64,000 bases of DNA, from NCBI GenBank assembly GCA_964199315.1, contig OZ116701.1, positions 11,470,001 through 11,534,000 of the forward strand, read 5' to 3'. A program made the position numbers and the translations under genes. Each line of letters starts with the position of its first letter. The first letter of the stretch is position 1. This stretch comes from Orbicella franksi (taxonomy: Eukaryota). This document shows, one piece after another, positions 47,482 to 63,800 of this stretch. The notes under the pieces were generated by a model, which was not told where the DNA came from, did not search any database, and saw only the letters and a list, made by a program, of their open reading frames with translations.

Positions 47482-50400
47482 ATGGAACTTCACTTTCTTG
47501 GGACAGGCTCTTGCTATCCATCTCCCCACAGGGGAGCATCGTGCACAATTCTTCGGCACGATACTGGCTGTTGGATGTTTGACTGTGGCGAAGGGACTCA
47601 AATTCAATTGATGAAGAGTTCCATTAAACCAACAAGAATTAACAAGATTTTCATCACGCACCTTCATGGGGATCATCTCTTCGGTTTGCCTGGTCTACTT
47701 TGCACTATGGGAATCAACTGTGCTGAAAATAGGGAGCCCATTGAAATCTATGGGCCTGTTGGCTTGAGAAAGTTCATCAGAGTGTCTTTGGGGTTGTCAC
47801 AATCATTGCTTGGCTTTAGCTACTCAGTGAACGAGCTTCACTGTGTTACTTCAGGTGAATTTTTAAGTTTAGTGGCTCATCTGAGGCCATAAGGTTTCCT
47901 CTATATCAGTATTTTGGATACTTTATTTGTATTTAAATACATTTACAGGTGTAGGAAGGGATTTCAACAAATGCCCAATTAATCCACTAAACATTCAGGT
48001 AGAGGGGTAAGATGAGTCAAATTGTAGCAAGATGGTAGTACCCTTGTATCTGGGCCAATATGTAAAAAAAGGCTTCAAGGAATATAACATGGTTTACTTT
48101 ATTTGTGAATGATACAAGATAATAAACATCGTGGCCATTGATTTGCCTTCCCTTGTAATTGATGAAAGAAAACAGTAAGCACAACATGAAAAAAAGCATT
48201 TGGGGCAGCAGTCACATCAGACTAGCATATTCCAGTGGATATCTCTTTTGGTGCAGAAAATACTGTGTGGACATTAATGGAGTGGGGGAGGTGGGGGGCA
48301 CTTCTGATTTTAGCACTTGTTCAATGTTACACACATACAGTATATCCATGATACTTTATTCTATCTCAGAGCAGCCTAAAATAGGCTAGTATCTCCAAGA
48401 AAATGAAAGTCAAACTAAAGTAACACTATGTATAGTGAATAAAATATTAACGTAGAAGAAGTTACAATTAGCCAATTAATTTTTGTTGTCGAATAATTTG
48501 CTTTAATTAGGTCATTGAGACAAGAAATAGCTCATAGTCTGTCAGGTAAAGCATTCCAGAACTTAGCTGCTGTATAAGTAAAGGAATTCAAGCCTTAAGT
48601 GGTAGTGCAAGGTTTAGGAAGGGTGAGGATATCAGTTCCTCACATAAAATAGTCTATAATAATTATGTTAAATTGGCCAATTTCATACATGCATGATGAT
48701 ATAAGCCCTAACCAGTTGCAAAAGGGACCTTCCCAGTGAAGCCAAGCAGAGCTAATTGTCAGGCTAATCCATAGTTAATAGAGGGAAATGGTTGTGAAAC
48801 CCAACAAAGTTCTGTGTTCTATGAATGCAAAACAAAAGATTGTGCATGGTCGTGGACCTTCCATTATAAGTCTCGGCATCTTTGTTTGCTCCAGCCCTGT
48901 GATGTTTGCCAGGCTTCATAGACATTTCTCTATGGCAAATCTAAAACAGAAATCTCTGCCACAGATTAACATAATCAACTTATTAGAAATGGATTTGCTT
49001 CCTAGCCGAGGGATATAGTAAATTACTCATTACTTAGTGTCTTCATGTTGCAAAAACCAGACTCCATTGACAAGGTCTCTGCTGTACTGACTGTACTGAG
49101 AGAAAATCTTTTATGCAGGTTTTGCTCAAGACAGCAGTGTGGAATGGACACACGCCCTCTCTGCATCAGATAATCTGCACCCAAATGAGACTTCTGGGAG
49201 GACAATTTATGAAGGTGATAATGGCAAATGGCAAGTTTGTCAAGAAGGAAATTTAACTGTGTTTGCAGCACCCCTAAAGCACCGTGTTACATGTTTTGGT
49301 TATGTAATACAGGAGCAACAGTTGCCAGGAAAACTGGATCCTGATCTTTTAAAACTGAGAGGTATTTCTCCAGGGCCTCTTTATGGAAAGATCAAGAACG
49401 GAGAAACAGTCACAGCTCCTGATGGCAGCCTGGTGATGCCTGCAGATGTCCTGGGACCACCGCGTCCTGGCCGTAAAGTTGTTATACTTGGGGATACATG
49501 TGACTCATCAAGGATTATGGACGTGGCTTCTGATGCAGATATAGTTGTTCATGAAGCTACTCTTGAAAATGAACTGATCGAAACATGCATAGATCATGGT
49601 CATTCAACTCCAGGTATTTTAATCAATTTATTTATCACTAATGGCGCTCTTCAAGATTTAATTCAATATCAATATTTGAAGGCAGAGTTCTAGTGTAAGT
49701 AAAAGGTACTCTGTATTGTTTGTGAAAAAATAGTAAATTAAAATGTTTTAAATAAGCATTTGATACAATCACAACTCTATTGTTATGGTACAAATAGATT
49801 TGTCATATCGTTGCCATTTGTCAATGATTAATTTTTTTTTCCACTAAGTCTTAAGAGAAAATGCAAAGATGGTCAGAGGAAGCATGCTGCTTAATAACAG
49901 CCTTAACAAATGGGTTGAATTCATTCACTGCAAATAAAGAAATAAAACCTCATTAAGTAATTTTTGATTGTCAAGGTAACGATACTGACATTGTAATAAG
50001 ACATTACAAATCAAAACTATCATCAAATTGAAGGAAAAATGAATGAAAATTAATTAAATAGTGATCTTTAACTCCAGTAGAAAAACACCAAAGATGTGAT
50101 AAATCAATAAATCAATAACATTAATATATAAAGACTATTGTAAATGTTTTATGATACACCATGTGTCACATATAATAAATATTGTTATTTATTTAGTTTA
50201 GGTTCTCTAACATTTTAGCTGTTCTCAATTATTGCATTCATGCTTGCACTTGTGTTTGTTCTTATCCCACAGAAATGGCTGGGTACTTTGCAGCAAAAGT
50301 CCAAGCCAAGAAGCTTGTTCTTACGCATTTTAGCCAGAGATATATGGGTTTTGGTGACAAAAGAGCAACCAAGACTGGTGACTGTGTTAGCATAGAAAAG

Positions 50401-52308: not shown

Positions 52309-53481
52309 TCATATAACTGCAAATGGATGGAGATCCAATCCGCCCAAGGCATCTCCATTGAAATAATACACAGGATACTGGTTATTTGGCTGCTGCCCAT
52401 TTGGTCCAGCTCCACCTGCATTTCTCCAGTGCTCTCTGAATCGATCTATTTCTTGCCGTCTTTGTTCCCCCCTCAGGTTGTAAATGCCATTTCCAATGAG
52501 ACCTCCCAATGTCCCTCCTACAGCAACACCAGCAGCCCCACTCCAGGGACCCAAGACAAAAGCGATGGCACCAATGCATCCACCCACCCCAGCTCCTATC
52601 TGGGCACCTGGGGTTCTGAGGGTGAGTGAGACCCATGTGTAAATGACTCCAAAGGCAAAGAGTATCATCTCTATGACTTCTTGAAGAACGTAGATAAGGC
52701 CAGCTCCCAGAAGCTCAACAGTTGCAGGATTCTCCAAGATAAGCCGGAAGATTTGAACAACAGGAGGGAGTGCAATTCCCAAGTTGTCCTCATCAGGGTT
52801 CAGCACGGTGCTAGTTATGATCAAGAAGTTCCTGACATTCAAGATCGCCTCTTGAACCGTCATGGATTTCCCCTGAAGGGTCTGGAATTTTTTCGCATCG
52901 TGATAGGCCCCCTCTAGCAGGCTGATCAGGGACGTGTATCCGGCAAAGTGGCCTGGTTCGGGCTTCTCTGCGCTGGTGGAGATTTCAACGCTTTTCTTCG
53001 CCAAGGAATTGGAAATGCTATTCCTCAACACTTGCTGATGATGCGGGCAGAGGTACAGATCTCGTTTGCCACTTTTCACCTCTGCGGGATTTATGTTGTT
53101 GCAGGAAGGGTGACGACAGACAACTTTGGTCGACATGAAGTTGGGATCAAACTGAAGAAGCACGATTTCTTCGTATGCTCCCAGGTGACCAGGATTTCGC
53201 AAAGTCACTTTGTTCTCAAAGTTGACTCCAAAAAGCTTTCTAGCGTCGAGAAACTTGGATTTGCTCACTTTCGGCGGTGTTGAGACATTTTTGAGGTTGC
53301 GATGAAGATCTCGATGCCAAGCTTGCACCGCCTTTGACACGACTTCGCCATTTATTCGGCCGTCCAACTCCGATCTCAAATACGAATCCTCCATTTTGTT
53401 TCCAACATTTTGGAGTAAAGTCGCGACTTTTCTGTATTGTTTAGCCTTTGATATCTCAGCGTCAGATGCGACTACCGCCAT
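52309..53481 (-). CDS. Uncharacterized intronless 390-aa protein (gene X1): Cys/His motif, helical region and glycine-zipper hydrophobic hairpin
   Basis: Uninterrupted ORF in a good start context (agaATGG); TATA-like motif about 45 bp upstream; a conserved paralog at 58189-59589 differs only by in-frame indels. Confidence 0.8.
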   Translation of the reverse strand: MAVVASDAEISKAKQYRKVATLLQNVGNKMEDSYLRSELDGRINGEVVSKAVQAWHRDLHRNLKNVSTPPKVSKSKFLDARKLFGVNFENKVTLRNPGHLGAYEEIVLLQFDPNFMSTKVVCRHPSCNNINPAEVKSGKRDLYLCPHHQQVLRNSISNSLAKKSVEISTSAEKPEPGHFAGYTSLISLLEGAYHDAKKFQTLQGKSMTVQEAILNVRNFLIITSTVLNPDEDNLGIALPPVVQIFRLILENPATVELLGAGLIYVLQEVIEMILFAFGVIYTWVSLTLRTPGAQIGAGVGGCIGAIAFVLGPWSGAAGVAVGGTLGGLIGNGIYNLRGEQRRQEIDRFREHWRNAGGAGPNGQQPNNQYPVYYFNGDALGGLDLHPFAVI

Positions 53482-53524: not shown

Positions 53525-53700
53525 TTTTATAGAACTCGTTGGGGGAAGCCCCTTCAATCGGCTCCCCATGCAAACGTGCCTTGGGAGAATTTTGCACTCG
53601 TCTGATAAAACATGAGCTCTTCAAACACGATATTATCCTTTCCTGTGCTTGATGACTTGGCACAAATAGGCTTTGGCACGTTGCCCTTTCACTTTCGATC
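53525..53700 (-). promoter_or_regulatory. Putative promoter of gene X1: TATA, kappaB-like and ISRE/IRF-E-like motifs
   Basis: Minus strand TATAAAA (53525-53531), GGGGCTTCCCCC (53541-53552), GAAAGTGAAAG (53686-53696). Confidence 0.5.
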
Positions 53701-55020
53701 ACGCGTTGAGAGCATTTTTGGGAATAAATTATTTACTTCTTGAAGCAAGATTAGATTTTCCCCTTCTCACTGTTTGGGTTCGAACAAATGGTGCTTCTTG
53801 GGAAAGGAAAATGTATTAATGTTACAGTTTTTCAAATAAAAGACTAAGGTAATATTACAGTTTTGCAAATCATCAAAGACTAAATCAACGTTAAAAATAA
53901 ATTTGATTTGATGAGCAAAGTAACGCGGGGAAAACCCCTGGGTTACGTCATTGTTATCTATTGTTCTCCGAAGATCTCGCAAGGTGGCCTGGGATACAGG
54001 TAAGGACTCAATATGGCGGCAAAGGCCGGCCAAACTTAGTGCCGGCTAAGGCACAACAGGGTCGCTGTGACCATGACACAGGCCCCAGGGATTTTGCATT
54101 AGACGGCTAGGCAAACGTACATCAGCCAAGATTATTGCAACTTGTTGCCTAAGAAACAAGAAACCTCTCAAGGACCTCAAGCTTTACGTGTAAGGGGATA
54201 CTGTATTAATATTGTTATGTGCTTCCTTTACGGAAAGGTTGTGATCCGTTTAATGTAGGAGCTCATCATATGTTTTTGTTTATAAATCGATCGAAAGATA
54301 ACAGGAATTACACTTTTAAAAGAACTATGAATACTAATTTTGCTGTCTAAAGTAGTCCCTATATTCATCAGGTCTTTAATCTTTAATAAGTATCCTCCTG
54401 AAACAGTGGAACTATACTAGGAGTTGAAAATAACATAATAAAAGCACGTAATAAATAATTGCAATATGTATATATACAGTAAAAATTATAAGTTAGTAAA
54501 AGATAAAATAAAATAGATTAAGTATAATCTCGTCGAGATAAGTTAGGACGTCTGAATATACATTATTATAGGTAGCTATTATTAAACTCCAGTGTACAAT
54601 TTCACAGCCATAACTTCTACTAATACAATTTAAACTTATACGTAAAGCCATGGGCTAGCTATGGAAGAAGACATATCCCAGTAACCTGAACAAGCTCGAA
54701 AAAGTATCACAAAAGAACAATCAAACTCTACCACTCCCTTGAAAAAATATCAGTATCACTAATGGGCACAGCTTACTCAAAAAACAAACAAACAAACAGG
54801 GAGGAACTATTGCCCCCTCCCCCCCCCCCTTCTTTTTTCCACACCAGTCCTGCAAAAAAAAAAAAAAATGAAATGAACACAATCTTACATGAAAGTAGTT
54901 GTTTGGGCTGTAACCCCTCCCTCCTGGTATTTATACCCCTGTAATGGTACCACACCATGAAGATCAATATAAAGATATTTTAATTCTAGAGTAATAAAAT
55001 ACAATAATTCTCAGGACTAA

Positions 55021-55406
55021 GGCCCAGTTCAGATGTTGTGCCTCTGCTGTGCCAAACTAAATTCAGGAATAAAGTACAACAAAAGCGCAGCAGAAGCACA
55101 GTGTCTGAATCAAACCTTTGAATTAAGTTTGACAAGCTCTGCTGTGCTACACGACTCTGGTATGGCAGCGATTCAAACATAGTGCATCTGTCGTGCCAAA
55201 CAAAATTCACAAATTATATTACCGTGTTTTGGTGAAATTATGTTCCCACAGGAAGTTAGGAGGAGAACTGTTACGAGGCATTCAATAAATCCTGAATTTG
55301 GTTTGACTCTGGCATGACGTCTGAATCAGAGTTGTTTTTCTGCTGTGGTACAGACCAAAGTTTAATTTAGTTCAGCACGGCACAAGCATGATGTCTGAAC
55401 TGGGCC
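55021..55406. mobile_element. PIF/Harbinger-like MITE
   Basis: TIRs ggcccagttcaga / tctgaactgggcc flanked by a TAA target duplication on both sides (55018-55020, 55407-55409). Confidence 0.75.
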
Positions 55407-56540
55407 TAAAGTACTTAAATAAATTTACGTAAAAACTTTTGTTTTCATTGCTGGCATGCTTTAAATGTGGCTAAGTAAATGTTTTGAAGTAATTATTAAC
55501 CTCGTACTAACCAAGCACAAGGGCCATAGTTGGGAATATTGACCCAAGGTTGTGGTAGTATGGACCTAAAGCAGCGAGGCTTGTACAAAAATGACTGAAT
55601 GCCAATATTTCGCAGTACAGTTCAAGCCAGCTAGGTTGATTTACTAAGTACTTTATTGTACGGCACTCGGACCATTCTTGTTTCGAATTTACCTGCTTTG
55701 GAAAACAAAACATAGACAGCTTATATCTGTTTGCATGGAAATGGTCTCTGTGGCAAAATTTTGACAAAGAAAGAACCGACCAGAACGGGCAAATTTTCCT
55801 CAGACTACTGTATTGAACTGGAACAATGTGGAGACCATGAGCTGTCATTTGAGGCTTTGGTTTAATGATTATGTTACACAAAGTAAGAAATGATACAAAA
55901 AGATATATGTTTACCGATCTCAGGCAAATTTGAAACAATTGAATCAAAGGCTTAATTAAAGGTATACAATTTCTAACAAAAACTGTGAAGGCGATATAAA
56001 ATAGGGTGTAAGAAAGTAACACACAAGAAACAATAATTGGTTTGCATATTGCGATGAAACTAATGAAAACAAGATACAATATAGTTTTTTTGTCTTCAGT
56101 GTCTAGAATATTACATTATGTTAATACATTTGATACAATCGTAACTCTATTATTTACAGCAAAAAACCAGATTAATTTTTTTGATTACTTAGTGATGCAT
56201 TTTTGATAGCCTTCTGAATCCTGATGACTTCCATTAAAACTATTTTGCAAATCAAATTGCATTAGAACAACTGTGCAAGTCAAAGATTTCAATTGTCAAA
56301 GTGTGGACATGGAGTTTCTCAACTCCAATATAGTTCAAGACCCATTTAAAACAACAGCCATTTTTTGCAATGAACAGATCAAAACTACCATCAAACTGAA
56401 GAAATATTCCATGAGAAAAAGAGGATAGAACCTATCTTCTTCTTAAATATATACCAAGTTTAGGTTCTCAAACATAAAAGAGTTTCCTTCAATTACCTCA
56501 TTTAAGTTTGCTCTTGAATTTGTTTGTTTTTATCCTACAG

Positions 56541-56761
56541 AAATGGCTGGGTACTTTGCAGCAAAAGTCAATGCCAAGGTGCTTGCTCTTACACATTTTA
56601 GCCAGAGATATAAGGGAGTTGGTGAAAATGTAGCAATCAAGACTGGAGACTGTGTTAGCATAGAAAAACTCCTCAGACAAGCAGAAAAAGCTTTTAAATC
56701 AGACAGTGTAATTGCTGCTGAAGATTTTATGGTTGTTCACATTCTCCTGAAACTTAAATGA
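56541..56761 (+). pseudogene. ELAC1: Diverged orphan copy of ELAC1 terminal exon (frame open, acceptor intact)
   Basis: tatcctacag|AA ATG GCT GGG..., [36 protein letters not shown]; flanked by remnants of intron 2; no exon 1 or exon 2 nearby. Confidence 0.75.
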
Positions 56762-58188
56762 TACTGGATCTTGGGCCAATAATTATAAAATGCATATGTT
56801 GTGGTATGAAAATTTCAAAGCAGTTTGGTTTTTATTTTTCATTCTCAGTTACAGTTAGACTGTTCACAGCCTCTCTATATTTCAACGCATGTGAATAATA
56901 ATGTGAGCAAAGTGAGCATGAGTGCAAAAGCACGATGGGGTGGGGGTAGGGAGGCAAGCAAAGTGAGCTCTTAATTCATCTCAGTTCCACCCCATACCCT
57001 GTCAAGTCATCCATTTTGCACTTGTGCCCAGTTTTCCTAAATATGAGAGTCACTTATAAAAGAAGATAGAACAATAGGTAACAAAATCTATGCGAAAAGT
57101 GGCAGTAGGATTATGTAATCTATCACTAGGCTAACAATAAACTTGTACAAAATCTTAAATGAATATTTACAAAACAAGTTGACAAGGTATAATATCCTAT
57201 TGAGTTAACTAACAAATTTAAATATGCTACTGCGAGTTTGCTATTAATAATTATAGTTTACAAGGGTATACCCCAACTAAAGCAGGAGAACAAAATTTTT
57301 CAACGTTTATCGTTTTCTTCCTTTTGAATGCTTCTTAGTTCAAACTGTGACTTAATTCCCTATGACTGTTACTTAGTATGATTTATGGCAACCTCCTTCC
57401 CAGGGTCGCTGCCTGGGAACGAGGTTTGGCACTCCACAAACAGTACCTTTCAAACTTATATGAGAATTATGTGTGGATTTTGGGTCTCTATATAATTACT
57501 GTTTTACACATATATGACACAATATGCGGTAAATTCTCCCACGGAAGTGAAAGAGTTAATGAGTTAAAAGTTAATCCCGTAAAAGAATTTTGGGTTTAAG
57601 CTTTATAATAACCACAATAATAACATATTCATGTCGTGCCTTAATTTAGCACTCTAAGGGGCTTTACAAAGTGTTAAAGCTTAGTTCAACTGCTAAAACT
57701 AGTAATACAAATACAAAGGTAAGAAATAACGAGTTTAGCAAAATGTGTAAAATAAAAAAATAAAAAAACTAACTATACTAACTAATAAAACTAAGACTAC
57801 ACATGTTATGTAGAAAAAAACAGTTAAGATTAGTTTTAAAAGAACTCACAGTATTAGTTTCTTTTAATACATACAGTACCATGCCTGTGGTAACCTGTTC
57901 CAAAAAAAAGGCAAATCTTCATATCACTATTGCTTAGTCCTGGGGACACATAAATGAGACATGCAGAATGTAGACAATGGCCTTCCAGATGTGTATCTGA
58001 GTGTGTAGTAGATCAAAACTATGCAGGCAGGTGCTAAATTTACTTAATGCTTAATTAAATCCTTAATTTAATAATGAATTTAATTATAGTGCACATGAAA
58101 GTATTAAAGAAGAAAAATGTTAAAAATAATATGTTGTTCAACTGGCAGCCAGTGAAGATCCTTGAGTAATGGTACGGTGCAAGTTTTG

Positions 58189-59589
58189 CTAGCCATTATA
58201 GTAACATTTTTTGTTCTTCATATGGCTGAAATTAAAACGCAGATCCAACGTAAACCCTCCCTTGGCATCTCCACTGAAATAGTATGCAGGATACTGATTG
58301 TGTGGTTGCCTGTTTGGCCCCAATCCATCTTTTTCTTGCCATCTTTGTTCCTCCCTCAGGTTGTAAATGCCATCTCCAATGAGACCTCCCAAGGTCGCTC
58401 CTACAACAGCACTAGCCAGCCAACTCCAGGGACCCAAAGAGGCAAAAGCAAAGGCACCAAAGAATCCACACACACCAGCTACTATCTGGGCACCTGGGCT
58501 TCTGAGGGCGAGGGACACCCATGTGTAAGTGACCTCAAAGGCGGAGAGTATCATCTTTATAACATCTTGAAGGCTAGCTACCAGACGCTCAATAGCGTCA
58601 GGATTCTCCAAAATAAGTTTCAATATTTCAACAACAGGAGGCAGTGCTATACCCAGGTTGTCCTCATCAGGGTTCAGCACGGTGCTGGTTATGATCAAGA
58701 AGTTCCTGACATTCAAGATAGCTTCTTGGACCATCGGGGAATTTCCCTGAGGAGTCTTGAATTTCTTCGCGTCGTGAAAGGCCCCCTCTAGCAGGCTGAT
58801 CAGTGACGTGTATCCAGCAAAGTGGCCTGGTTCTGGCTTCTCTGCACTGGTGGAGATTTCAACGCTTTTCTCCGCCAAGGCATCGAAAATGCTATTTCTC
58901 AACACTTGCTGATGATGCGGGCAGAGGTACAGATCTCGTTTGCCACTTTTCGCGGCTGCGGGATTTACGTTGCTGCAGGAAGGGCGACGACAGACAACTT
59001 CGGTCGACATGAAGTTGGGATCAAACTGAAGAAGCACGATATCTTCGTACCCCCCTATGTAACCAGGATTTCGCAAAGTCACTTGGTTGTCAAAGTTGAC
59101 GCCAAAAAGCTTTCTAGCATCGTAGAACATGGAGTTGGTCACCTTCGGCGGCGTTGAGACGATTCCGAGATTGTGAAGAAGATCTCGATGCCAAACTTGC
59201 ACCGTCTTCGATTTCGATACTTCGCCGTTTATGAGGACATTCAGCCTGGGAGCAGGCTCTTTTGACTCTTCAATGTCTTCAGCCTCTTGGGGCTCTTTTG
59301 GTTCTTCGTGCTCTGCAGCCTCTTCACGGTCTTCAGCCTCTTCGGGCTCTTCAAGCTCCTTAGGCTCTTGAGGTTGCTGGCGGAGAAGGAGAGAAACTGG
59401 AGAAGGAAGGCGGTCTAACTCAGCTCTCAAATTCTCGTCAGGTTCTTCAGACTCGTCGAGAGGAAGGAGAGAAGTTAGGCTGTCTAACTCCGTTCTCAAA
59501 TACTCTAAGTTGTCTCCAACATCGAGTTGTCTGGATCGTTTGTTTTTGGCTTTTGATTTCCCTTTAGCGCCATATACTATTACTTCCAT
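58189..59589 (-). CDS. Uncharacterized intronless 466-aa protein (gene X2), paralog of X1 with acidic N-terminal repeat insertion
   Basis: Uninterrupted ORF; the core aligns to X1 (DARKLFGVNF, IVLLQFDPNFMST, KSGKRDLYLCPHHQQVLRNSI, QEAILNVRNFLIITSTVLNPDEDNLGIALPPVV identical). Confidence 0.8.
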   Translation of the reverse strand: MEVIVYGAKGKSKAKNKRSRQLDVGDNLEYLRTELDSLTSLLPLDESEEPDENLRAELDRLPSPVSLLLRQQPQEPKELEEPEEAEDREEAAEHEEPKEPQEAEDIEESKEPAPRLNVLINGEVSKSKTVQVWHRDLLHNLGIVSTPPKVTNSMFYDARKLFGVNFDNQVTLRNPGYIGGYEDIVLLQFDPNFMSTEVVCRRPSCSNVNPAAAKSGKRDLYLCPHHQQVLRNSIFDALAEKSVEISTSAEKPEPGHFAGYTSLISLLEGAFHDAKKFKTPQGNSPMVQEAILNVRNFLIITSTVLNPDEDNLGIALPPVVEILKLILENPDAIERLVASLQDVIKMILSAFEVTYTWVSLALRSPGAQIVAGVCGFFGAFAFASLGPWSWLASAVVGATLGGLIGDGIYNLREEQRWQEKDGLGPNRQPHNQYPAYYFSGDAKGGFTLDLRFNFSHMKNKKCYYNG

Positions 59590-60820
59590 TCCTGAATAAA
59601 TTGGACACCACTCGTTTCCTCTACCTTTCAGACAGGGCGACCGAACGTGAAAGTATTAAAGCCTGTTTGCCTTGCAATACATTGTTTTGGAACAGAAGTA
59701 GGGAAAAACCCCACGACTCGGCCCATGTTTACTTTCACTTTCGATCGCCCAAAGAAAGGCGTTTTGGTTGGAGTGCCTTTAATAAATCTGGACGTTTGAA
59801 AATACATTAGATTTCTCGAAGCAAGTTTAGATTTGCTGATTTGCACTGTTTTGAATTCAACACTATGGTATTTCTACAGAATAGGGAAACGTAGGAGAAA
59901 TGTATTTTATCGTTACAAATAACGTTGGAAATAAATTTGATAGGTTTGATATGACGGGTTAAAGTAAACACTTGGATGTTTTCGTTGGACAAAGGGAAAT
60001 GTCAGCCTTAAAAGCACAGGATCGGTATCGAACCCAGAACAATCAAGACATTGGTGTGTCTCAGTCACTGGAAAGCTGGCTCTCAGTAGTCTGAAACTGT
60101 AAGAATATATCGTATATAAAGTAAATACACACTAAGTGATCTTGGTGTTTTAATTTAGGCAGATGCTCTGTCATGCTTGTCAGGAAAAGTGATCTTCCCG
60201 CTCCTATGACGGTTTGTAGGGGAGGAGTGTTTACATGTGAGCACAAAGAGACCGTACAGCATCTGCGTAGGTGACCATTTGTCACAATGGACGGTCAGTA
60301 ATGATCAAATTAACACAATAAAGCAATAAATTAGAAAATAGATTATAGCCAAGCTCTATTTTAGTAGAGAAGTTAAATTGGGCTCAAGATTGATTGATTG
60401 ATTGCAGTAAATTTTCTTTAATCAATTGTCAACTGCAAACGTAAAATGTCACAATGAAATATTCATTTGCCTGAGAATACTAACATCTATGCATTTACAC
60501 AATAATTATCATGGATGGCATTTCAGACACAATTAGTCTACAATTGATGGACAGCTTGAACTTGATGATGTCAAGCTGGCAGAAATCAAGCTCGTCCCAC
60601 ATGCACTTCAATGTATGTAGTCTGATTTTGTTCATAGTCACAAACACAAACACGATCATTATGTGAAGATTGAATCACCTAGACATGTACAGAAATAACT
60701 GTGTGGCCAAGACAACAGAATAGTTTTCAGTCCCTCCTTATTATTTGTTAATCCTTAAGGAAATGATGTCATTGCAGGGCTGCTGGTCATGGTGTCGTCA
60801 TGGTGAAGCTTGTCAGAAGG

Positions 60821-63800
60821 AGTTTAGTGGCTCATCTGAGGCCATAAGGTTTCCTCTATATCAGTATTTTGGATACTTTATTTGTATTTAAATACATTTA
60901 CAGGTGTAGGAAGGGATTTCAACAAATGCCCAATTAATCCACTAAACATTCAGGTAGAGGGGTAAGATGAGTCAAATTGTAGCAAGATGGTAGTACCCTT
61001 GTATCTGGGCCAATATGTAAAAAAAGGCTTCAAGGAATATAACATGGTTTACTTTATTTGTGAATGATACAAGATAATAAACATCGTGGCTATTGATTTG
61101 CCTTCCCTTGTAATTGATGAAAGAAAACAGTAAGCACAACATGAAAAAAAGCATTTGGGGCAGCAGTCACATCAGACTAGCATATTCCAGTGGATATCTC
61201 TTTTGGTGCAGAAAACACTGTGTGGACATTAATGGAGTGGGGGAGGTGGGGGGCACTTCTGATTTTAGCACTTGTTCAATGTTACACACATACAGTATAT
61301 CCATGATACTTTATTCTATCTCAGAGCAGCCTAAAATAGGCTAGTATCTCCAAGAAAATGAAAGTCAAACTAAAGTAACACTATGTATATTGATTAAAAT
61401 ATTAACGTAGAAGAAGTTACAATTAGCCAATTAATTTTTGTTGTCGAATAATTTGCTTTAATTAGGTCATTGAGACAAGAAATAGCTCATAGTCTGTCAG
61501 GTAAAGCATTCCAGAACTTAGCTGCTGTATAAGTAAAGGAATTCAAGCCTTAAGTGGTAGTGCAAGGTTTAGGAAGGGTGAGGATATCAGTTCCTCACAT
61601 AAAATAGTCTATAATAATTATGTTAAATTGGCCAATTTCATACATGCATGATGATATAAGCCCTAACCAGTTGCAAAAGGGACCTTCCCAGTGAAGCCAA
61701 GCAGAGCTAATTGTCAGGCTAATCCATAGTTAATAGAGGGAAATGGTTGTGAAACCCAACAAAGTTCTGTGTTCTATGAATGCAAAACAAAAGATTGTGC
61801 ATGGTCGTGGACCTTCCATTATAAGTCTCGGCATCTTTGTTTGCTCCAGCCCTGTGATGTTTGCCAGGCTTCATAGACATTTCTCTATGGCAAATCTAAA
61901 ACAGAAATCTCTGCCACAGATTAACATAATCAACTTATTAGAAATGGATTTGCTTCCTAGCCGAGGGATATAGTAAATTACTCATTACTTAGTGTCTTCA
62001 TGTTGCAAAAACCAGACCCCATTGACAAGGTCTCTGCTGTACTGACTGTACTGAGAGAAAATCTTTTATGCAGGTTTTGCTCAAGACAGCAGTGTGGAAT
62101 GGACACACGCCCTCTCTGCATCAGATAATCTGCACCCAAATGAGACTTCTGGGAGGACAATTTATGAAGGTGATAATGGCAAATGGCAAGTTTGTCAAGA
62201 AGGAAATTTAACTGTGTTTGCAGCACCCCTAAAGCACCGTGTTACATGTTTTGGTTATGTAATACAGGAGCAACAGTTGCCAGGAAAACTGGATCCTGAT
62301 CTTTTAAAACTGAGAGGTATTTCTCCAGGGCCTCTGTATGGAAAGATCAAGAACGGAGAAACAGTCACAGCTCCTGATGGCAGCCTGGTGATGCCTGCAG
62401 ATGTCCTGGGACCACCGCGTCCTGGCCGTAAAGTTGTTATACTTGGGGATACATGTGACTCATCAAGGATTATGGACTTGGCTTCTGATGCAGATATAGT
62501 TGTTCATGAAGCTACTCTTGAAAATGAACTGATCGAAACATGCATAGATCATGGTCATTCAACTCCAGGTATTTTAATCAATTTATTTATCACTAATGGC
62601 GCTCTTCAAGATTTAATTCAATATCAATATTTGAAGGCAGAGTTCTAGTGTAAGTAAAAGGTACTCTGTATTGTTTGTGAAAAAGTAGTAAATTAAAATG
62701 TTTTAAATAAGCATTTGATACAATCACAACTCTGTTGTTATGGTACAAATAGATTTGTCATATCGTTGCCATTTGTCAATGATTAATTTTTTTTTCCACT
62801 AAGTCTTAAGAGAAAATGCAAAGATGGTCAGAGGAAGCATGCTGCTTAATAACAGCCTTAACAAATGGGTTGAATTCATCCACTGCAAATAAAGAAATAA
62901 CACCTCATTAAGTAATTTTTGATTGTCAAGGTAACGATACTGACATTGTAATAAGACATTACAAATCAAAACTATCATCAAATTGAAGGAAAAATGAATG
63001 AAAATTAATTAAATAGTGATCTTTAACTCCAGTAGAAAAACACCAAAGATGTGATAAATCAATAAATCAATAACATTAATATATAAAGACTATTGTAAAT
63101 GTTTTATGATACACCATGTGTCACATATAATAAATATTGTTATTTATTTAGTTTAGGTTCTCTAACATTTTAGCTGTTCTCAATTATCGCATTCATGCTT
63201 GCACTTGTGTTTGTTCTTATCCCACAGAAATGGCTGGGTACTTTGCAGCAAAAGTCCAAGCCAAGAAGCTTGTTCTTACGCATTTTAGCCAGAGATATAT
63301 GGGTTTTGGTGACAAAACAGCAACCAAGACTGGTGACTGTGTTAGCATAGAAAAGCTTCTTAGGCAAGCAGAAATAGCGTTTAAATCAGACAGTGTAATT
63401 GTTGCTGAAGATTTTCTGGTCATCAAACTTCCCCTCAAACACTAATGATAATGGATCTTGGGATAAGAAAATGCATACATGTATGTTGTGGTTTAATAAA
63501 GGTATATTGGTTTAAAATGTTTCAAACCAGGTTGATCTTTTTTTTCAGTCTCATTGTTAAAGGGCCATTATAATTATTGTAGCAGACTCATGCAGACCTC
63601 AATGAAGCTGTACTCCCCTTGAACATATTGTGAGTGGTGACATGAAGTGGGGACATGCTGCATTGACAGTTTACCTCATTTGACATGCCAGTAGTTCTGT
63701 TGCAGCAACAAAATTTTGTTCCTACGACATGCATGAAATTCAGATGGGTTGAATTCGTGCACCATGAAGCAGGGACAAAATGACCTCAATTCTCAGTGTT

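Follow-up and report, generated by a model that had tools for sequence, protein, structure and literature searches.

The window analyzed here, a stretch of 64,000 nucleotides of the Orbicella franksi contig OZ116701.1, contains two tandem members of a single gene family, X1 and X2, together with a set of short upstream features (Table 1). The X2 protein begins with an acidic low-complexity extension, and over the part common to both proteins it is 74% identical to X1, with a silent-site divergence (dS) of 0.37. The original prediction treated the two as orphan paralogs; this was not borne out, as the family ranges across stony corals and sea anemones and includes a Stylophora pistillata protein with 65% identity to X1 (XP_022803486.1, our P0031) and a homologue in Actinia tenebrosa confirmed at a profile E of about 1e-66. 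A further protein, P0001, is 98% identical to the X1 protein. No Pfam family scored above the cut-off in X1, and a search of the PDB and AFDB Swiss-Prot libraries with the AF2 model (pLDDT 82) gave nothing significant; by these same comparisons no homology of X1 or X2 to a vertebrate ISG was found. The top structural matches pointed to a ClyA-type pore-forming toxin fold, but are too weak (E 0.2-0.5, TM about 0.12) to count as evidence. The protein itself is unstudied, and a literature search by gene name found no mention of LOC110052401 or LOC111340838 in the main texts of papers. A bidirectional promoter joining X1 to ELAC1 was also considered and rejected, the sole ELAC1 first exon within the window lying at 47482-47889.

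Table 1. Features of the X1 and X2 genes and their upstream regions (positions in the window)
Feature	Position	Strand	Remarks
X1 coding sequence	52309..53481	-	ORF; 390 aa, single exon
X1 TATAAAA box	53525..53531	-	44-50 bp 5' of ATG
X1 proximal kappaB-like site GGGGCTTCCCCC	53541..53552	-	includes GGGGCTTCCC, fits GGGRNWYYCC
Conserved words TTTGCAT (53568-53574) and AAATTCTCC (53584-53592)	53568..53592	-	
X1 IRF-E/ISRE-type element GATCGAAAGTGAAAG	53686..53700	-	-219 to -205 from ATG
X1 upstream block alignable with X2	53717..53815	-	70% identity
X1 distal kappaB-like site GGGGTTTTCCCC	53927..53938	-	at -457
X2 coding sequence	58189..59589	-	ORF; 466 aa
X2 probable 5'UTR	59590..59652	-	block highly conserved in three clades down to ATG
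Inverted degenerate third IRF-type copy GACCGAACGTGAAAG	59639..59653	+	adjoins X2 TATA-like box
X2 TATA-like box TTTAATAC	59653..59660	-	predicted core promoter
X2 kappaB-like site GGGGTTTTTCCC	59701..59712	-	19 bp 3' of IRF-type element
X2 IRF-E/ISRE-type element GATCGAAAGTGAAAGTAAA	59728..59746	-	two GAAAGT units plus AAA; -157 to -139 from ATG
X2 upstream block	59795..59893	-	homologous to 53717-53815

The word GATCGAAAGTGAAAG is found 143-219 bp 5' of the ATG in X1 and X2 alike. As originally reported, the 15-mer CTTTCACTTTCGATC is exactly identical at 53686-53700 and 59732-59746, and the longer form of the X2 element, GAAAGTGAAAGTAAA, is present at 59728-59742. When up to two mismatches are allowed, CTTTCACTTTCGATC has 3 matches against 0.16 expected. 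Both promoters contain GAAAGTGAAAG, in which tandem GAAA cores are separated by a two-base spacer (GAAANNGAAA, with AANNGAAA half-sites); the consensus for such elements was taken from PMC7819612, which gives the IRF1 recognition words as AAGTGA/GTGAAA repeats. The degenerate inverted copy GACCGAACGTGAAAG near X2 is matched at the homologous position in a sister clade, clade B (loci L020, L023, L024 and L031), by a perfect GAAAGTGAAAG. The two upstream regions were compared by local BLAST and anchored views, as global MAFFT alignment misplaced the 15-mer. The original statement that the flanking DNA aligns poorly holds for the immediate flanks and for the stretch down to the ATG, but not further out, where the upstream regions are collinear and share the 70%-identical block.

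The element is followed in the 3' direction by a TATA box in X1 (at -50) and by a TATA-like box in X2 (at -71), and then by the conserved block that is probably 5'UTR; some X1-clade orthologues have this block too, whereas it is deleted in the X1 of the window. Throughout the X1-clade alignment the X1 box is kept as ATAAAATAA, and that of X2 is conserved in clades B and C as TTTAATAC or TTAAATAC. Judging from the position of its TATA box, X1 transcription probably starts about 20 bp before the ATG. The transcription starts are predicted from these boxes; in principle the IRF-type element could instead lie within a 5'UTR. Additional conserved words occur between the proximal kappaB-like site and the IRF-type element of X1: AAATTCTCC is common to 5 of 11 clade representatives, and TTTGCAT adjoins the kappaB-like site also in the Acropora-like locus L005.

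The three kappaB-like sites occur where the original prediction placed them. Their assignment to GGGRNWYYCC stands for the two X1 sites (GGGGCTTCCC and GGGGTTTTCC) and fails for the X2 site GGGGTTTTTCCC, which has one base too many and fits in no 10-mer register. Though off-consensus, the X2 site is conserved as GGGRTTTTTCCCTA over two clades, and clades B and C share the conserved module GTCGTGGGRTTTTTCCCTA, which is inverted in Orbicella. Among X1-clade orthologues the proximal site is kept or slightly varied (GGGGCTTCCC, GGGGGTTTCC, GGGGTTTCCC), and has decayed in two. The deeper clades possess one or two distal kappaB-like copies at about -380 to -430, and in L003 and L008 these sites form tandem pairs 26 bp apart. 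Canonical GGGRNNYYCC sites are present in 8 of 12 clades, as against 4.4% of genomic windows (P about 3e-10), and in 13 of the 29 distinct promoters, having been lost or degraded in several lineages. Actinia tenebrosa has two family genes, and the 437-bp spacer separating them also holds two good kappaB-like sites and no double-GAAA site. The kappaB-like sites are thus conserved across the family, less strictly than the IRF-type element.

The 15-mer shared by X1 and X2 is by itself weak evidence, because 400 alignable neutral bases at a dS of only 0.37 should, by our estimate, yield about 0.7 identical 15-base runs, and because the loose motifs are at the background level in the window. Motif frequency was named with the original prediction as a check: in the window as a whole GAAANNGAAA has 9 matches against 7.1 expected and GGGRNWYYCC has 7 against 3.4, both counted as background. 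The case hence rests on position and conservation rather than on the frequency of the motifs. The exact 11-mer GAAAGTGAAAG has 6 occurrences in 3.3 kb of promoter sequence versus 2 in 134 kb elsewhere.

Among close orthologues the entire proximal promoter is conserved and the motif does not stand out; in the X1-clade alignment CGAAAGTGAAA forms an invariant block of 11 columns. An identical 13-15-mer is found 5' of the orthologues in L001, L003, Orbicella L004 and L007. For 29 distinct promoters of the family 220 bp or more of upstream sequence was available; exact GAAAGTGAAA is present in 23 of these and GAAANNGAAA in 28. By clade, 10 of 12 representatives carry GAAANNGAAA, compared to a genomic rate of 6.8% among 500-bp windows (tail P about 1e-9), in a test that treats homologous promoters as independent and consequently measures retention, not independent origin. 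An unbiased k-mer count over 11 clade representatives recovered AAAGTGAAA and GAAAGTGAA as the most widely shared 9-mers, and only 2 of 200 shuffle sets have any word shared as widely. Clades in which the motif persists are separated by a silent-site dS of 0.95-2.2, and the motif is found out to lineages saturated at silent sites (dS 1.2-2.5). Comparison of orthologous promoters, a check of the kind proposed earlier, identifies the IRF-type element as the best-conserved word across stony corals, and its presence in nearly all promoters and most clades, together with its rank among the k-mers, is retention of the kind produced by purifying selection, far beyond the neutral expectation. In the cross-clade variants GAAACTGAAA, GAAAATGAAA and GAAAACGAAA the two GAAA cores are kept, while the spacer and flanks vary. 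A double-GAAA site is absent from L038 and L039, the coral-metagenome members that diverge most.

Published expression tables provide information on relatives of X1 and X2. After 2'3'-cGAMP the Stylophora gene XP_022803486.1 rises about 15-fold (log2FC 3.95, padj 1.6e-36; PMC13319465, Supplementary Data S22/S23), and the Nematostella orthologue XM_001629490.3, whose orthology rests on the published OrthoFinder assignment, about 650-fold (log2FC 9.35; PMC13319465). The latter probably corresponds to LOC5508998, which ranks second by induction in the original table. Nematostella encodes five IRFs whose DNA-contact residues are conserved, and one IRF1/2-like gene also ranks with the genes most induced by cGAMP (log2FC 9.0, about 500-fold). 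The earlier proposal that X1 and X2 are pathogen-inducible, ISG-like genes thereby gains indirect support from the conservation of the promoter across species and from the cGAMP induction of the Stylophora and Nematostella relatives. By analogy with these, X1 and X2 would be expected to be inducible in Orbicella franksi itself.

Taken together, these observations suggest that both 15-mers are probably the same functional element of the IRF-E/PRDI/ISRE type, forming part of an immune-response promoter with the kappaB-like sites. This promoter would combine, just upstream of each of the two tandem genes, an IRF-type element having two GAAA cores two bases apart with one or two kappaB-like sites of the p50 type. 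Sensing of nucleic acids or cyclic dinucleotides, via cGLR-STING or RIG-I-like receptors, would activate an IRF1/2-like factor and NF-kB, which are predicted from the sequence to occupy the IRF-type and kappaB-like sites 5' of the TATA box. Transcription of X1 and X2 would then climb sharply, chiefly in immune-type cells.

It is also conceivable, if unlikely, that the element is functional and conserved but is read by a zinc-finger or other non-IRF protein recognizing the longer GATCGAAAGTGAAAG, and that the GGGG...CCCC sites are bound by another Rel-homology protein, such as NFAT, rather than NF-kB. The conserved GATC prefix (or AATC, GTTC or GATT) lies outside the usual IRF consensus, and vertebrate PRDM1 binds almost the same word as the IRF-type element. 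PRDM1 as the binder was judged unlikely, since a comparative survey leaves Prdm1 out of the set shared by cnidarians and bilaterians (PMC4760075). In Nematostella, expression induced by cGAMP was not lowered when any one of the five IRFs was knocked down singly, and NF-kB accounts for only part of the cGAMP programme in this animal (PMC8713801). The papers that could be searched gave no binding data for any cnidarian IRF on this or another element. The core, however, is a textbook IRF1/2 site (PMC7819612), the tolerated variants keep the GAAA cores as expected of such a site, and the Nematostella orthologue shares both its induction and its expression pattern with IRF1/2-like genes, all of which favors an IRF.

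A second alternative, to which we give a similarly low probability, is that the element specifies cell-type identity: a basally active IRF1/2-like factor would maintain constitutive expression in immune-type cells, and the whole-animal fold changes would reflect kappaB-driven induction or the expansion and activation of immune cells rather than acute inducibility through the element. The Nematostella orthologue indeed marks an immune cluster, being detected in 60% of its cells versus 5.5% elsewhere, and within immune cells it differs little between poly(I:C) and control (average log2FC just 0.35, and -0.41 in another contrast; PMC13319465). IRF1-2a has been reported to mark immune cells in the basal state, and IRF1 drives the basal expression of defence genes (PMC7819612). 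On the other hand, the rise of about 650-fold in polyps given cGAMP, where the mean count is very high, and the increase in Stylophora are hard to obtain without induction per cell. The IRF1/2-like gene is, moreover, steeply induced itself. The third alternative, that the 15-mer and kappaB-like strings are a remnant of the tandem duplication or a dispersed repeat lacking a regulatory role, draws on the low X1-X2 dS, at which a chance identical 15-run is not rare in alignable neutral DNA, and on the background frequency of the loose motifs, but is very improbable and largely refuted: the element is retained in lineages at dS 1.2-2.5, in which alignment of the DNA around it has been lost, the 11-mer is nearly absent outside promoters, orientation and copy number shift between clades while presence is kept, as is typical of binding-site turnover, and the flanks differ between copies, so that there is no larger repeat around it.

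The proposed IRF-type immune promoter can be compared with several known systems. The vertebrate IRF-E/PRDI/ISRE similarly comprises two GAAA cores with a 2-base spacer and is promoter-proximal and near kappaB sites; GAAAGTGAAAG includes the AAGTGA and GTGAAA hexamers that defined IRF1, and some family members read GAAAGTGAAACT, the ISRE core. The coral element differs in having the conserved GATC prefix in place of the usual G/A-rich 5' flank and in occurring in a lineage without interferon or known ISGF3, and X1 and X2 have no vertebrate counterpart. In the human IFN-beta enhancer PRDIII-I adjoins PRDII. X2 and clades B and C show a comparable layout, in that the IRF-type site lies 19-20 bp 5' of the kappaB-like site and both would be about 50-100 bp from the start if the predicted TATA-like box is used. 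In L003 and L006 the two kinds of sites abut or overlap; in X1, in contrast, they are 133 bp apart. Orthologues of X1 and X2 are among the most induced genes of the Hexacorallia cGAMP/STING programme (Margolis 2021; Li 2023; PMC13319465). These studies list the gene as unannotated, and the portions of their texts that could be searched contain neither promoter motifs nor a demonstration of IRF dependence.

The cnidarian response to cGAMP and dsRNA is broad and interferon-like in the absence of interferon. In the X1/X2 family a promoter that is both short and conserved to great depth, and that contains kappaB-like sites along with a textbook IRF site, stands in front of a gene that, per published tables, is among the most strongly cGAMP-induced in Hexacorallia; this combination suits the family to direct tests of which transcription factors read the signal, and makes it a candidate sensitive marker of coral innate immune activation. 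Tentatively, and with considerable doubt, we propose that an IFN-beta-like composite of IRF-type and kappaB-type sites just 5' of the core promoter already existed in the stony-coral ancestor, perhaps in that of all Hexacorallia, where it would have switched on a lineage-specific effector gene directly downstream of STING/RLR signalling. If so, virus-inducible enhancer logic would predate interferon, and this family would be its best-preserved natural cnidarian reporter. A parallel for the kappaB-like sites exists in the Nematostella TRAF3 promoter, where similar G4/C4-rich sites less than 1 kb from the start (GGGAAAGCCCC and GGGGAACTCCCC) bind Nv-NF-kB in EMSA and are required for reporter activation (PMC10329013). 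The X1 sites GGGGGAAGCCCC (plus-strand reading) and GGGGAAAACCCC are not identical to these in sequence, but share the same style of a G-run followed by a C-run.

The 15-mer GATCGAAAGTGAAAG (gene sense), described in the original prediction as identical upstream of the tandem minus-strand paralogs X1 and X2, is exact at 53686-53700 and 59732-59746, beginning 219 bp upstream of the X1 ATG and 157 bp upstream of the X2 ATG, and in X2 it reads on as GAAAGTGAAAGTAAA, as had been claimed. The three kappaB-like strings also lie exactly where they had been placed, and the observation as such is confirmed; the X2 site departs from the GGGRNWYYCC consensus, the other two sites not being counted as misfits. 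A third copy of the 15-mer, degenerate and inverted, is present at 59639-59653. The flanking DNA had been said to align poorly; in fact the upstream regions are collinear, with a 70%-identical block (53717-53815 and 59795-59893), and both remain from a single duplication. As standalone evidence the shared 15-mer is not very strong: at a synonymous divergence (X1 versus X2) of just 0.37, we estimate that 15 consecutive identities arising by chance within a few hundred bases of alignable neutral DNA would be nothing unusual. The comparison of motif frequency with background, suggested earlier as a check, turned out negative, as both loose consensus forms occur at the background rate of the 64-kb window (GAAANNGAAA, 9 found versus 7.1 expected; GGGRNWYYCC, 7 versus 3.4).

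X1 and X2 had been regarded as orphans; a protein search instead recovered 222 relatives, including named proteins from Stylophora pistillata, Orbicella faveolata and Acropora muricata, and a profile search gave a family of 141 clusters at 50% identity. One cluster member comes from the sea anemone Actinia tenebrosa, a homologue which, at the sequence level, confirms the presence of the family in sea anemones. Our sample comprised 50 genomic loci with family members, including metagenome contigs, which represent genomic DNA and show collinearity to the window; the 43 family genes located in these loci fall into about eleven clades. The Actinia locus (WAHB01000349.1; L050:1451-4203) contains two head-to-head family genes separated by a 437-bp spacer.

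The IRF-type element was searched for within 500 bp of the ATG in 29 distinct family promoters for which 220 bp or more upstream were available. The exact GAAAGTGAAA occurs in 23 of the 29 and GAAANNGAAA in 28; the element most often follows GATC or a word close to it. In the same loci the exact IRF-type 11-mer has six occurrences in 3.3 kb of promoters and two in the 134 kb of DNA outside them. When one representative per clade is considered, GAAANNGAAA is present in 10 of 12, versus 6.8% of genomic 500-bp windows (tail P about 1e-9) and about 9% of dinucleotide shuffles, statistics that gauge retention and not independent invention, as the clades are homologous. An unbiased word count over clade representatives ranks AAAGTGAAA and GAAAGTGAA first among the common words (6/11 clades), followed by GATCGAAAG, ATCGAAAGT and the unrelated AAATTCTCC; any word reached a count of 6 in just 2 of 200 shuffle sets. 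The dS between X1 and the clades that keep the element is 0.95-2.2, and the surrounding DNA does not align there. The presence of the element is kept across clades though its orientation and copy number differ: it forms a palindromic pair in Orbicella, a cluster of three or four GAAAGTGAAACTGAAA copies in one clade, and two copies in the Acropora-like locus. This pattern is typical of a selected binding site, not of a frozen repeat, and the 15-mer is very probably a selected cis-regulatory element. In Orbicella faveolata (L004:3830-3900) a segment with one IRF-type copy and a kappaB-like site is inverted relative to X2 of the window, and this copy forms a near-palindrome of about 70 bp with a second, sense-oriented copy.

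Features of the X1 and X2 promoters and genes; promoter rows are ordered towards the gene (minus-strand genes)
Feature	Position	Strand	Remark
X1 distal kappaB-like site	53927-53938		
X1 conserved block	53717-53815		
X1 IRF-type element	53686-53700		
X1 word AAATTCTCC	53584-53592		found in 5/11 clades
X1 TTTGCAT	53568-53574		octamer-like
X1 proximal kappaB-like site	53541-53552		
X1 TATAAAA	53525-53531		
X1 ATG	ends at 53481		
X1 coding sequence	52309-53481	minus	single exon, 390 aa
X2 IRF-type element	59728-59746		
X2 kappaB-like site	59701-59712		
X2 TTGCAAGGCAAACA	59664-59677		
X2 TTTAATAC	59653-59660		TATA-like
X2 inverted IRF-like copy	59639-59653		
X2 conserved block	down to ATG at 59589		probably 5'UTR
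X2 coding sequence	58189-59589	minus	single exon, 466 aa

Judging from this layout, transcription of both genes would start downstream of the TATA or TATA-like boxes. AAATTCTCC and TTTGCAT are two further conserved promoter words. In X1, and likewise in the two Acropora-like genes, TTTGCAT adjoins a kappaB-like site, and the two words were noted also across the family loci L002, L003 and L005.

Canonical GGGRNNYYCC sites are found in 8 of 12 clade representatives versus 4.4% of genomic windows. Such a site is kept in just 13 of the 29 family promoters, with decayed versions in several, which is a looser conservation than that of the IRF-type element. The X1 distal site, GGGGTTTTCC(CC), has counterparts in many orthologues at about -380 to -480, in some cases two in tandem, 26 bp apart, and the non-canonical X2 site belongs to a module, GTCGTGGGRTTTTTCCCTA, conserved in two clades, where it lies downstream of the IRF-type element at a distance of 19-20 bp. 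The Actinia spacer contains the kappaB-type sites GGGGAAATCCC and GGGGGTTTCCC and no double-GAAA site. In their G-run/C-run style the family sites resemble those of the Nematostella TRAF3 promoter, which are bound by Nv-NF-kB and needed for reporter activation (PMC10329013). A perfect palindromic kappaB decamer, GGGAATTTCC, within the X2 coding sequence (58737-58747) is probably a chance occurrence.

Published expression tables cover orthologues of these genes. The gene for S. pistillata XP_022803486.1 (P0031 in our set), 65% identical to X1, responds to 2'3'-cGAMP in corals with baseMean 1488, log2FC 3.95 and padj 1.6e-36 (PMC13319465, Supplementary Data S22; Stylophora values from the data of Li et al. 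2023). By the orthology given in that study, its OrthoFinder orthogroup (OG0005172) pairs it with Nematostella XM_001629490.3, an immune-cluster marker (average log2FC 4.46; detected in 60% of the cells of this cluster and 5.5% of the others) that reaches baseMean 96,902 and log2FC 9.35 in the re-analysed Margolis et al. cGAMP data and, inside immune cells, changes little with poly(I:C) relative to control (average log2FC 0.35; PMC13319465). Given the near-identical values and the accession numbering, this gene probably corresponds to LOC5508998, which ranks second by induction in the original Margolis et al. table (log2FC 9.30). X1 and X2 are thus likely to be immune-inducible in this coral, and their earlier interpretation as pathogen-inducible, ISG-like genes is supported, chiefly by evidence beyond the reach of a sequence-only reading. 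Their promoters would represent a new instance of a known promoter kind in a lineage without interferon; specific to this family are the depth of conservation and the tie to a top-induced, still unnamed cnidarian cGAMP-response gene.

With regard to the binding factor, GAAAGTGAAAG includes both AAGTGA and GTGAAA, units that defined IRF1 binding (PMC7819612). In Nematostella the DNA-contact residues are conserved in all five IRFs (PMC8713801), and an IRF1/2-like gene is cGAMP-induced (log2FC 9.0; Margolis et al. table) and marks the same immune cells as XM_001629490.3. Single IRF knockdowns in Nematostella left the cGAMP response unblunted, which counts against an IRF, although redundancy or incomplete knockdown could explain the result according to the authors (PMC8713801). 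For cnidarian IRFs, our literature search turned up neither a published binding site nor a reporter test. Vertebrate PRDM1 recognises a similar word; a comparative survey did not place PRDM1 in the gene set common to cnidarians and bilaterians (PMC4760075). On balance we lean towards a putative IRF-type site that contributes, together with the kappaB-like sites, to induction by the STING/RLR pathway.

The X1 and X2 proteins are 74% identical across 344 common residues, with an extra acidic N-terminal stretch in X2, and a Pfam search yielded no family above the cut-off for either. At the protein level the X2 lineage is fast-evolving, with a dN/dS of 0.50-0.87 for X2 against its own orthologues (L004, the second gene of L007, and L030) and 0.16-0.25 for X1 against its own, a difference consistent with one paralogue being under relaxed or diversifying selection. 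AlphaFold2 gives a confident model for X1 (mean pLDDT 82, pTM 0.80), which is mainly helical and includes a small beta region as well as a glycine-rich hairpin of low confidence. Searches of the PDB and AFDB Swiss-Prot libraries with this model gave no significant match, the top, non-significant ones being ClyA-type alpha-pore-forming toxins. Residues C122, C127, C145, H148, I186, R217 and N218 are invariant in 48 family members.

Plus-strand ELAC1-like exons are interleaved with X1 and X2 (47482-47889, 49130-49630, 56540-56760 and 62085-62585), the second exon being present twice. A bidirectional promoter shared by X1 and a complete ELAC1 copy is ruled out by these positions, since the only first exon in the window is at 47482-47889 and the terminal exon at 56540-56760 has no upstream exons nearby. 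A segment of about 2.3 kb (54205-56538) that is missing from the 94%-identical contig L011 contains a MITE-like element (55020-55407) whose terminal inverted repeats span 44 nt and are 80% complementary.
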